Positions 59,582 to 64,000 of a DNA stretch of 64,000 nt are shown piece after piece. Each line of letters opens with the position of its first letter. Within the stretch, counting starts at the first letter, position 1. A model generated the notes under the pieces. The model worked only from the letters and a program-made list of their open reading frames with translations, ran no database searches and was not told the origin of the DNA. A program made the position numbers and the translations under genes. This stretch comes from Rebecca billardiae RCC1528 (taxonomy: Eukaryota; Protista; Haptophyta), in assembly GCA_965240325.2 (NCBI GenBank), contig OZ251233.1, forward strand, positions 186,001-250,000, written 5' to 3'.

Positions 59582-61151
59582 GACGAATTCATCACTCTGC
59601 TCCGATGACCGAGCGGCGCGCATTATATATATATATATATATATATATATATATATATATATATATATATATATATATATATATATATATATATATATAT
59701 ATATATATATATATATATATATATATATATATATATATATATATATATATATATATATAGCTGCTGCGGCTGCGCATGCAGTGCCATGAGCCCTCTATAC
59801 CAGTTGTCGGTCTGCTGCATATATATAACCTGAAAAACCCAATCGTGTTGGGAGGCAGGGGGTCACATGAGCCCTAAGTGCAGCGCCGCAAGACCGGGCG
59901 GTCGGACGGCGGGTGTTGTGATCCCGCCGCCCGAGCACCAGACCAACGGGCCCTGGGTGGGCGGGTTGCCGAAAGATGTTGGTCGGTGCACGCGACGCGC
60001 CACCCGCGTGCGAGCCGCCGCCGCCGGCGACGCAGGACGAGCTTGGCTGGAGCCATCTCGCACGCCGCGCCTGGCGAAGCAGGCGGCAGAGGCCGGCGCC
60101 GGAATCGGACCGATCTCCTGGGCGGCAGAACAACCCGGACAGACTGTTTGTCCGGGAGCAGCGCCCTTTGAGGCGATGGTCTGGTAGAGGGCGATGTGGC
60201 TGATGAGCGGCGCTGGCGCCCGGCGTTCTTGTCGTCCTCTTAGACAATCAGTTATTGTACCAATAACCCCACGTCTAGCCGTCCTCGTGAACGCCGACGC
60301 CAACTGCTGGCCGAAGGTGGGCACGCCGCCTGGCATGTCGATGCCGAGGCGGCTGCGTGTGCTCCTACTCAGTGGGATTTACGTGTCCTCATGCCTTGGC
60401 GAGCGGCAGCAGATGCGGTGCGGCGGACGAATTCATCACTCTGCTCCGATGACCGAGCGGCGCGCATTATATATATATATATATATAGCTGCTGCGGCTG
60501 CGCATGCAGTGCCATGAGCCCTCTATACCAGTTGTCGGTCTGCTGCATATATATAACCTGAAAAACCCAATCGTGTTGGGAGGCAGGGGTCACATGAGCC
60601 CTAAGTGCAGCGCCGCAAGACCGGGCGGTCGGACGGCGGGTGTTGTGATCCCGCCGCCCGAGCACCAGACCAACGGGCCCTGGGTGGGCGGGTTGCCGAA
60701 AGATGTTGGTCGGTGCACGCGACGCGCCACCCGCGTGCGAGCCGCCGCCGCCGGCGACGCAGGACGAGCTTGGCTGGAGCCATCTCGCACGCCGCGCCTG
60801 GCGAAGCAGGCGGCAGAGGCCGGCGCCGGAATGACCGATCTCCTGGGCGGCAGAACAACCCGGACAGACTGTTTGTCCGGGAGCAGCGCCCTTTGAGGCG
60901 ATGGTCTGGTAGAGGGCGATGTGGCTGATGAGCGGCGCTGGCGCCCGGCGTTCTTGTCGTCCTCTTAGACAATCAGTTATTGTACCAATAACCCCACGTC
61001 TAGCCGTCCTCGTGAACGCCGACGCCAACTGCTGGCCGAAGGTGGGCACGCCGCCTGGCATGTCGATGCCGAGGCGGCTGCGTGTGCTCCTACTCAGTGG
61101 GATTTACGTGTCCTCATGCCTTGGCGAGCGGCAGCAGATGCGGTGCGGCGG
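59582..61151. repeat. Two tandem copies of apparently non-coding unit X, each with a (TA)n tract
   Basis: Copies start at 59582 and 60426; (TA)68 at 59624-59759 versus (TA)10 at 60468-60487; otherwise only two small indels. Confidence 0.95.
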
Positions 61152-64000
61152 GCTTGCGGCGGGCGGGGTACGGAAGGCCAATAGTGGCGTCGAGGGTGCC
61201 GTCTCTAGTGAATGATATGTGCCCGCCGGCCGCCGGCGTAACTAAGTAGGGACTAGCACTTCTTGACTTGGCGGAGTGGCGGACACATACAGCTTGATGC
61301 TATTGCTACTTGCATGATTATGGCCTGTCTGCCGTCGAGCGAGCGTGCGCAACTAAACTGCATAGGTAGCTCACCCACCGCCGGCCCGCCACAGACTGTA
61401 CCGTACCCCACCGACAAAACCGCTTCGCCGCCCGCCCCAACCGCGCGCGCGCCGTGGAACGGCATCCATGACCTTTTGGTTCGGAACGAGCGGACCAGAA
61501 TGGAATCCGTCTCGTCTGGAGAAAGCGCTCGCTTTCAATCAAAAACTTTCGTCGGATTCGCTTTTGGACGCTCGCTGACGAGGCAGACTATCATGGACCC
61601 AAGAGGGCTTGTGGGCGCTCAGGATTCAGATAGTATGACTGCGTACCCAAGATCTTGCGTGTGCGTATGTCCGAAAAGGACATGGTTCACGTGTTCAGTA
61701 ATCACCCACCCGCGTGTCCTTAAGTGAAAGGCGGCCCCCCGGATGGTGTTTCCCTAAAGCGCGGCTGCCGGTTCAGGCAGGGCGTGCGGCCACCTGGTAT
61801 ACCGATAGTGCGATACGGGCCGCAGCAGTGAGCACGGAGCCGGCCGTTATATATATATATATATATATATATATATATATATATATATATATATATATAT
61901 ATATATATATATATATATATATATATATATATATATATATATATATATATATATATATATATATATATATATATATATATATATATATATATATATATAT
62001 ATTGAACTACCGTATACTGACTACTACCTACGACTCATACTGTGCCCCCGGTTCCGAGCGCGGCGAGCGCCAGTGACTAGACGCTCAGCGTGCGTGCGGT
62101 AGGCGCCTGATTGTGAAGGCTCATGCGGTGGGCATGCCGCTCGCCGTCGACGAGACGCGGTGCGCGAGTGATCCCGTTTCATGGTGTGTTGGGGAACACC
62201 TCGGCATCGACCGTCACGACTTTGAAGCGGCGGTTGAGCGCACGCTGCTGCTCGAGGTTGCGACCGGGCGGGAAGATGTGCTCGTAGGGGTACTGCATGG
62301 CCAGATTTGTCGTGAACACGCGTGGCATGTCTGCGGGGATCTTGGCATTCGTGTAGCGCGTGTGCACCGATCGCTCGTAGTTGGGGTCGAGCATCTTGAT
62401 CACGGCCTTGGCCGTCATGTGCGTGAAATCCATGTCGTCGAAGACGATACCGTCGTTGCGAGCCGTCAAATCCTTCAGGTCATCCATCTCGGACACGAGA
62501 AGAGGGTTCTCGAAGTGCGACAGCCCGAACTCCGTCTTGCCGTGGCCGGATCCACCTGCGAGCACGACAGCCATCCCATCAGAGAGGTCGAGCGGCAGTC
62601 GCGCAAACGAGCTCATGGCGAAGCGCGGCGTGACGCCGCTGCCGTGTCGGTGGCGGATCATGGCGAGCACGGCATGGCCGTAGCGGTAGTAGATCGACGG
62701 GTGCTCGCACTGCAAGATGTCCGCTGCCTCGTCTGCAGACTGTGCTGCGTGCAGCGCGCGCGCCCAGTCGACGCCGCACACGTCGAGCGGCTCTGGAATG
62801 GTTGCCCAGTTGGCGCTGATGATGAAGTTGGACGGCCCCTCCTTCTGGCAGTAGTGGATGCACTTCGCCAGGTCACGCTTCGTCGGGCCCATCGGCTCGT
62901 GGTACGCTCGCAGCGTGCCCCAGCCCTGGAGGGGGAGGTCAAAGGCTGTGACCAGGCAGTCCGTCTTCATCTCCGATCCGATGACGGCGTGGAAGTGCCA
63001 AGCGCGGCTGAGTATTGTGCGGCGGGCTTGCGGCGGGCGGGGTACGGAAGGCCAATAGTGGCGTCGAGGGTGCCGTCTCTAGTGAATGATATGTGCCCGC
63101 CGGCCGCCGGCGTAACTAAGTAGGGACTAGCACTTCTTGACTTGGCGGAGTGGCGGACACATACAGCTTGATGCTATTGCTACTTGCATGATTATGGCCG
63201 GTCTGCCGTCGAGCGAGCGTGCGCAACTAAACTGCATAGGTAGCTCACCCACCGCCGGCCCGCCACAGACTGTACCGTACCCCACCACAAAACCGCTTCG
63301 CCGCCCGCCCCAACCGCGCGCGCGCCGTGGAACGGCATCCATGACCTTTTGGTTCGGAACGAGCGGACCAGAATGGAATCCGTCTCGTCTGGAGAAAGCG
63401 CTCGCTTTCAATCAAAAACTTTCGTCGGATTCGCTTTTGGACGCTCGCTGACGAGGCAGACTATCATGGACCCAAGAGGGCTTGTGGGCGCTCAGGATTC
63501 AGATAGTATGACTGCGTACCCAAGATCTTGCGTGTGCGTATGTCCGAAAAGGACATGGTTCACGTGTTCAGTAATCACCCACCCGCGTGTCCTTAAGTGA
63601 AAGGCGGCCCCCCGGATGGTGTTTCCCTAAAGCGCGGCTGCCGGTTCAGGCAGGGCGTGCGGCCACCTGGTATACCGATAGTGCGATACGGGCCGCAGCA
63701 GTGAGCACGGAGCCGGCCGTTATATATATATATATATATATATATATATATATATATATATATATATATATATATATATATATATATATATATATATATA
63801 TATATATATATATATATATATATATATATATATATATATATATATATATATATATATATATATATATATATATATATATATATATATATATATATATATA
63901 TATTGAACTACCGTATACTGACTACTACCTACGACTCATACTGTGCCCCCGGTTCCGAGCGCGGCGAGCGCCAGTGACTAGACGCTCAGCGTGCGTGCGG
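61143..64000. mobile_element. Head-to-tail array of a ~1.87-kb CRESS-Rep-encoding unit (endogenous ssDNA virus/satellite or HUH transposon)
   Basis: 61143-62099 recurs at 63017-64000 (period 1874; 1 SNP and 1 indel outside TA); (TA)77 at 61848-62001 and (TA)91 at 63721-63902; continues off the window. Confidence 0.85.
62179..63078 (-). CDS. rep: CRESS-DNA-virus-type replication initiator Rep (HUH endonuclease + SF3 helicase); N-terminus unresolved
   Basis: Motif II WHFHAVI (~62980-63000, upstream of the track's ATG), motif III YCQK, Walker A GGSGHGKT, Walker B IVFDD, motif C FTTN, Arg finger ALNRR. Frame is open back to a TAG near 63080. Confidence 0.92.
   Translation of the reverse strand, partial: RRHPRRHYWPSVPRPPQARRTILSRAWHFHAVIGSEMKTDCLVTAFDLPLQGWGTLRAYHEPMGPTKRDLAKCIHYCQKEGPSNFIISANWATIPEPLDVCGVDWARALHAAQSADEAADILQCEHPSIYYRYGHAVLAMIRHRHGSGVTPRFAMSSFARLPLDLSDGMAVVLAGGSGHGKTEFGLSHFENPLLVSEMDDLKDLTARNDGIVFDDMDFTHMTAKAVIKMLDPNYERSVHTRYTNAKIPADMPRVFTTNLAMQYPYEHIFPPGRNLEQQRALNRRFKVVTVDAEVFPNTP

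Follow-up and report, generated by a model that had tools for sequence, protein, structure and literature searches.

Among the eukaryotic mobile elements that carry a Rep protein of the HUH type, Helitrons have asymmetric ends, and their Rep, with two tyrosines, is joined to a helicase of the SF1B class. Replitrons have a Rep without a helicase, usually with HUQ in place of HUH, and short direct terminal repeats (Craig, 2023; PMC10288648). Endogenous Rep sequences resembling those of CRESS DNA viruses, which have a circular single-stranded genome that encodes a Rep, and geminiviruses occur in the nuclear genomes of eukaryotes (Liu et al., 2011; PMC3198968); the same source describes a geminivirus-like transposon of Tuber melanosporum with an open reading frame (ORF) similar to Rep, 37-bp terminal inverted repeats, a microsatellite, transposase ORFs and recently amplified copies (PMC3198968). 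Here we describe a Rep gene fragment in the haptophyte Rebecca billardiae RCC1528, found in a stretch of 64,000 nucleotides (assembly GCA_965240325.2, contig OZ251233.1, positions 186,001 to 250,000, forward strand; hereafter the window, with coordinates counted from its first letter). The fragment is part of a young tandem array at the right end of the window, and this array is probably the outcome of tandem duplication by the host, at a (TA)n-rich site prone to breakage where an endogenous, 5'-truncated Rep fragment was present. Since the Rep lacks the start of its DNA-cutting domain, the repeated unit is a genomic fossil and not a working mini-replicon. The window copy groups with such endogenous Rep fragments, with which it shares a capsid-less, Rep-only and partly truncated viral-type Rep in chromosomal DNA (PMC3198968); in contrast to them, the tandem duplication that contains it is very young and has long (TA)n tracts, and its closest relatives are metagenomic units bounded by terminal inverted repeats (TIRs), not known viruses.

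The array consists of two adjacent sets of direct repeats, here called A and B. The first B unit (61143-63016; 1874 bp) comprises a 705-bp segment X, a (TA)77 tract, and a segment R with the Rep fragment; the second (63017-64000) repeats X, continues through (TA)91 into the first 97 bp of R, and ends at the window edge, so that about 1.5 B copies are visible before the window stops at 64000. Positions 61143-62099 pair with 63017-64000 in head-to-tail orientation, and the period of the first copy is 1874 bp. Left of the TA tract the two copies (705 and 704 bp) show 703 matches, one mismatch and one one-base gap; right of it, 97 of 97 positions match, for an identity of about 99.7%. The two copies differ at one substituted base, at a single-base indel that is not in a homopolymer run, and in the length of the TA tract, 155 vs. 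183 bp; both tracts are perfect, (TA)77.5 at 61848-62002 in copy 1 and (TA)91.5 at 63721-63903 in copy 2. The earlier note, written by a model from the letters alone, had reported an 1874-bp head-to-tail unit with only two differences outside a (TA)n tract of 154-182 bp, and these measurements bear it out. Segment X (61152-61847 and 63026-63720, counted from the end of the boundary word described below) showed no relation to Rep, to the relatives' 5' regions, or to other parts of the 64-kb window.

Directly upstream of B, the A segment (0.72-0.84 kb) is also tandemly duplicated. Its first copy (59582-60425; 844 bp) has a perfect (TA)68 tract of its own at 59624-59759 (136 bp); the second (60426-61151; about 726 bp) has a perfect (TA)10 at 60468-60487 (20 bp) and abuts X. 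The A copies differ by three small indels outside the TA tract and by 116 bp in TA length. Rep homology is absent from the A segment, its ends show no significant inverted repeats, and neither A nor X has a further copy within the 64-kb window. Four perfect (TA)n tracts are thus contained in the last 4.4 kb. The sole other TA-type tract seen outside this interval is an imperfect, TA-rich one at 9819-9897, approximately 83-87% like (TA)n. The A/A, A/B and B/B boundaries, at 60418, 61143 and 63017, have a 9-bp word in common, GTGCGGCGG (at 61143-61151 on the plus strand for the A/B boundary), which is part of a short direct repeat rich in GC; across the 64-kb window the word occurs four times on the plus strand, three of them at these array boundaries.

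The Rep gene fragment (62179-63018, minus strand) is truncated at its 5' end and retains 279 codons up to a natural stop; the ATG-to-stop ORF (62179-62970, minus strand) measures 263 amino acids, and the homology extends beyond it to approximately 63009-63018. Over the retained 279 codons there are no stops and no frameshifts, the 5' truncation being the one break. A nuclease remnant with motifs II and III (about 62785-63018) is followed on the minus strand by the oligomerisation helices (about 62644-62766) and a superfamily 3 (SF3) helicase ATPase (about 62203-62586). The fragment carries motif II (HFH), motif III (Y..K, with one tyrosine), Walker A, Walker B, motif C and the arginine finger, and all family-invariant residues of the retained part are kept. 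From the stop, 176 nt (62003-62178, minus strand) lead to the (TA)n tract; the corresponding distance from Rep stop to right end in relatives is similar (185-271 nt), and an element terminus is possible within 62003-62178. The GC content at third codon positions (GC3) of the Rep is 0.84, compared to 0.76-0.90 in host genes. The strand opposite Rep also has an ORF of 336 amino acids (62113-63123, plus strand), which probably owes its existence to the high GC content; ORF length alone is therefore weak evidence in this DNA.

On its own, the window Rep protein gave no significant Pfam match and no significant sequence match in the PDB, and its identification is therefore based on homologue searches and fold; an exact-protein look-up returned no record of the ORF. 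Among 1.8 billion cluster representatives, 1537 relatives were found at E ≤ 1e-3, and a word-indexed homologue search yielded 23 homologues. Of 60 aligned relatives, 29 matched Viral_Rep, 12 Gemini_AL1, and six Gemini_AL1_M in Pfam; the nuclease domain of the closest clade is Gemini_AL1-like (P0036 at 5e-7, P0001 at 1.3e-4). A profile of the relatives gave only a weak match to the Rep of porcine circovirus 2 (PCV2; E = 0.005). The AlphaFold model of the window Rep (predicted local distance difference test, pLDDT, 90.7) matched the SF3 helicases of adeno-associated virus (AAV) Rep68/40, B19 NS1, PCV2 Rep, and papillomavirus E1; the top structural matches were AAV Rep68/Rep40, and the PCV2 Rep ATPase reached a target TM-score of 0.62-0.66. 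By homology and predicted fold, the window protein is a CRESS-type Rep on the geminivirus-like side.

The Rep homology ends at the B-unit boundary, and the first 50 or so residues of the nuclease domain are gone; the missing part corresponds to the first two strands and the first helix, and includes motif I and a family-invariant glutamate. Full-length relatives have approximately 50-150 residues ahead of the point where similarity to the window begins. Among 44 aligned relatives, the threonine of motif I is near-invariant and the second-strand glutamate is invariant, and both precede the start of the window fragment; a hidden Markov model (HMM) of 20 full-length relatives aligned to the window only from profile position 84. 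When the N-terminal parts of P0001, P0024 and members of their clusters were compared with the 711 nt upstream, no similarity above chance was found in any frame (z = 0.3 to 1.7), and no other Rep pieces were found within the 64-kb window. In the structural model of P0001 (pLDDT 92.2), which matches the full-length CRESS Rep 9pqq_A better than any other structure (E = 1e-8), strand 1 with motif I is followed by a helix, strand 2, and then strand 3 with the HUH motif; the window fragment starts at strand 3, near P0001 residue 47-50. The window Rep consequently does not have the complete five-strand nuclease fold with motif I that characterizes a CRESS Rep. With the B boundary located within the nuclease domain, motif I is missing from the Rep of every internal unit, and such a protein cannot be expected to nick DNA.

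The B unit is incomplete in other respects, too. No second conserved ORF that could represent a capsid gene was found in it; the other sizeable ORF, of 154 amino acids in X (61263-61727), has no Pfam match and is shortened in B copy 2 by the single-base indel. Outside the TA tract, the B unit contains no perfect stem of at least 7 bp with a loop of 5-15 nt that would resemble an origin hairpin; the inverted repeats in X are weak, and the best local fold of the unit is weaker than in the 5' regions of relatives. A degenerate nine-letter pattern for the origin nonanucleotide, taken from general knowledge, had no match in the B unit, and the conclusion on the origin is based on the hairpin scans. 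The score for a terminal inverted repeat of the B unit equals the shuffle mean, terminal direct repeats were not seen in it, and an Rfam scan of the window found no RNA family. With regard to gene content, the earlier note held up well: it had reported HUH motifs II and III plus a full SF3 helicase, and both motifs align with the relatives, motif I being absent, while the SF3 invariants and fold are present; it had seen no capsid ORF, and the only other sizeable ORF has no Pfam match and is not kept in copy 2; and it had placed a CRESS-type Rep in a young head-to-tail chromosomal repeat, a reading that is now supported.

The closest relatives of the window Rep, the clusters P0001 (55% identity over the whole retained part) and P0024 (58%), were found, like the next tier (38-40%), on small contigs of metagenomic origin, several of which are marine (Tara). 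These relatives are capsid-less units of 1.7-2.6 kb with Rep as the only long ORF. A P0001-type unit of 1730 bp occurs with 98-99% identity in six contigs (L001 435-2164, L008 2491-4220, L009 71-1800, and also L002, L104 and L105), where six different left flanks are joined at the same first base; the right end is the same in four of the six. This unit is bounded by inverted repeats of 32 nt, of which the right one varies: it is 11 nt shorter in L104, and L002 and L105 share a different end. Inverted repeats also surround the Rep in L007 (28 nt), L004 (23 nt), L013 (32 nt) and L011 (153 nt). The terminal inverted repeats of L001, L008, L004, L013 and L007 are significant (0 of 1000 shuffles reach the score), and the TIRs of the relatives begin with TA or TTA. 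For the P0024-type unit, L106 1-1872 (public run SRR30531182) matches L007 179-2047 and ends within 1-2 nt of both inverted repeats; an assembler that breaks at the borders of an element present in multiple copies would be expected to leave such ends. The 8.7-kb contig L011 contains a Rep unit between 153-nt inverted repeats, with a third copy of the repeat 1.4 kb away (2014-2166, 3454-3606 and 5437-5589), other short inverted-repeat pairs (including 1640-1938 and 8001-8331), and, beside the Rep unit, a RING-H2 gene (6549-7730, minus strand); from this content, it looks like eukaryotic genomic DNA.

Upstream of rep, five relative loci have long hairpins with arms of 26-36 nt (L001 638-700, L003 448-528, L004 983-1054, L012 1039-1119, L013 1137-1216); in four of the five, the arms contain twice-repeated 8-mers of the GTTGTGCA or GTTGTACA type. 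These hairpins are candidate Rep-binding origins, long ones in contrast to the short stem-loop that is usual in CRESS viruses. The contigs of close relatives show no circular overlap, and their flanks are foreign; more distant relatives, at the level of the helicase, often show circular overlap and a second large ORF. Only helicase-level relatives were found in IMG/VR, and prokaryotic genomes produced a single stray match of 976 nt. At the nucleotide level, L001 and the window align in the Rep coding part only. The closest relatives look like an undescribed kind of mobile element.

The window unit and its relatives share some features with described systems and differ from them in others. With Helitrons they have in common that these are eukaryotic HUH elements able to form tandem arrays; unlike the Helitron protein, the window Rep has a one-tyrosine motif III and an SF3 helicase, and the Helitron combination of two tyrosines and SF1B helicase is not found in it. 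Replitrons are likewise genomic elements of eukaryotes (algae and plants) with a single Y1 Rep protein related to CRESS Reps; in contrast, the window Rep combines HUH with a full SF3 helicase and its unit shows no short direct terminal repeats, whereas the relatives have inverted ones. Alphasatellites and pCRESS plasmids are capsid-less and have a single HUH and SF3 Rep gene on 1-2.6 kb, as here, yet the window unit has no origin hairpin, and the contigs of the relatives have foreign flanks and no circular overlap. By analogy, the relatives resemble parvovirus-type replicons such as AAV in their HUH and SF3 protein and inverted termini, and share with them chromosomal integration; they differ in lacking sequence-level membership and a capsid gene, in their Gemini_AL1-like nuclease, and in the far smaller size of the units. 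The Tuber element, finally, is a TIR-bounded Rep unit like the metagenomic relatives, and its microsatellite recalls the (TA)n association in the window; however, it has transposase ORFs, whereas Rep is the sole long ORF in the 1.7-2.6-kb relatives, and the window copy is without detectable inverted repeats. Word searches of the literature for CRESS Rep elements of algae, and for elements with inverted repeats at their ends, brought up nothing of use.

The host duplication that we favour would have proceeded as follows. An element with a geminivirus-like CRESS-type Rep (HUH, oligomerisation and SF3 domains) would have entered the GC-rich nuclear genome and left a remnant that begins shortly ahead of HUH motif II, reaches the natural stop, and includes the 176 nt beyond it up to the long perfect (TA)n. 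Long (TA)n tracts form cruciforms and stall replication forks; breakage, and restart at the GC-rich microhomology GTGCGGCGG, could then have generated two adjacent tandem duplications, one of which would have cut through the nuclease domain. Their products would be the A segment in two copies and the B segment (X, (TA)n and Rep fragment) in at least 1.5 copies; fork stalling with a template switch is the mechanism that we infer, together with the order of these events. Since the Rep has no motif I and the unit no origin-like hairpin, the array is attributed to host DNA repair and not to Rep-driven rolling-circle replication; the A array is of the same style and shares the boundary word, and a host duplication therefore explains the whole array without a rolling circle. 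Several points weigh against this reading. The right end of the array is outside the window, and the last unit could continue into an intact Rep or a terminus. The A and B arrays share one boundary, which would be a coincidence if the duplications were independent and could mark a site-specific process. The retained Rep has all invariants, neither stop nor frameshift in 279 codons, and a host-like GC3, and such an intact part fits very recent activity or selection as well as it fits a young fossil. The nearest relatives look mobile, and this leaves room for a Rep-dependent origin of the tandem copies; the fork-stalling step, for its part, is drawn from general knowledge of long (TA)n tracts.

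A further reading concerns the ancestry of the fragment: it is possible, if somewhat doubtful, that the window Rep belongs, as a dead and duplicated copy, to a group of eukaryotic integrating elements that has yet to be described, 1.7-2.6 kb in size, with nothing but a geminivirus-like HUH and SF3 Rep, a long hairpin with iterons upstream of it, and TIRs of 23-153 nt, and present in several flanking contexts in GC-rich aquatic eukaryotes. A group of this kind would stand apart from Helitrons and Replitrons, as transposons that Rep mobilises or as integrating replicons with Rep only; the (TA)n association would then reflect a preference for TA targets. The window Rep falls in the same clade as the TIR-bounded relatives, and significant TIRs were not found around it. 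An undescribed HUH and SF3 transposon class, one of two options raised in the earlier note, gains indirect support from relatives that are TIR-bounded, Rep-only units in varied flanks, and none from this locus itself. The other option, a replicon or recently amplified Rep-only circle, does not agree with the truncated nuclease, the absence of an origin-like hairpin and of termini, and the similar A array. A modified form of it, in which rolling-circle or one-ended read-through transposition of a defective, sub-genomic Rep element, with an intact copy elsewhere acting in trans, led to integration at the GC-rich word, would account for head-to-tail copies of about 99.7% identity, for a fully intact helicase part, for closest relatives that are discrete units in multiple contexts, and for one 9-bp word at all three boundaries; it is nevertheless unlikely, as the B unit has neither origin-like hairpin nor termini and only part of the nuclease domain, the A array is built in the same way without Rep homology, and the boundary word is unlike the termini or hairpins of the relatives.

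The 1718 bp that separate two (TA)n tracts could also be a complete, diverged TIR-type element whose 5' half, X, has decayed, and the array could have formed by unequal crossing-over between the flanking (TA)n. Such an element would resemble the L001 type in size and layout (relatives measure 1.73-1.87 kb); Rep homology is reached 692 nt from the left end in L001 and 673-705 nt from it in the window, and the BLAST alignments of some relatives pass slightly beyond the boundary. X had been considered as the element's native 5' half on account of an in-frame, motif I-like hexapeptide upstream and of 8-9 nt that match the terminus of the L001 type and lie at a distance of 32 nt from the TA tract. 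These resemblances proved to be at chance level: the score of the terminus match was reached in 194 of 2000 shuffles, the left- vs. right-end score equals the null mean (the same test gave 0 of 1000 on five relatives), and the N-terminal similarity (z = 0.3 to 1.7) and the HMM alignment, starting only at position 84, gave no indication of a 5' half. The invariant glutamate is absent, no long hairpin like those upstream of rep in the relatives is found, and the left copy is joined to A inside the supposed element. A native 5' half was rejected on these grounds, and a complete element is quite improbable; nor is the idea that the B/B boundary merely reflects the phase of the repeat supported by the HMM, N-terminal, terminus and hairpin tests. 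The long perfect (TA)n tracts are hard to assemble and the window ends inside the array, and a single copy could have been expanded into a false tandem repeat at these tracts; yet the B copies differ by a substitution, a non-homopolymer indel and 28 bp of TA length, and the A copies by three indels and 116 bp of TA length, so that an assembly artefact is very improbable. Slimmer still are the chances of a domesticated fragment, a motif I-less Rep expressed from the internal ATG (62970) and kept for interference with incoming related Rep elements. Dominant-negative truncated Reps are known for geminiviruses, and the retained part is intact, with all helicase invariants and a host-like GC3; however, ORFs of this length are common in DNA of 63-73% GC, where the antisense 336-amino acid ORF overlaps the Rep, and the duplication is too young for intactness to tell much about selection.

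The locus itself is of modest significance. It adds another endogenous CRESS-type Rep fragment to those known, and on the reading favoured here it cleanly illustrates a site, rich in (TA)n, at which tandem duplications bounded by microhomology arise. Its larger value is as a lead to the nearest Rep clade, with its small, capsid-less, inverted-repeat-bounded units in several flanking contexts. Should it be true that these relatives move by their own Rep, they would add a third kind to the HUH transposons of eukaryotes, the first to have an SF3 helicase, and might represent a living link from CRESS replicons to elements resident in genomes.

The array is embedded, on the evidence of the genes around it, in ordinary eukaryotic nuclear DNA, and the window as a whole has a GC content of 73%. 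The neighbouring host gene has exons for an SNF2-family helicase (56306-57852, minus strand) with an SNF2-related domain and Helicase_C. Farther upstream, an uninterrupted ORF of 932 amino acids with a PAS domain and ankyrin repeats (49438-52236, plus strand) encodes a product for which protein collections contain no exact match. A Copia-type reverse transcriptase ORF (46032-48017, minus strand; RVT_2, E = 6e-18) is surrounded by an island of lower GC content (56-64%) at 42000-49000. An 11-kb array of GC-rich, GCGGCG-type repeats with periods of 12, 24 and 36 nt occupies 20396-31535; it has a GC content of about 85%, and a strong plus-strand skew of G over C (approximately 0.45).

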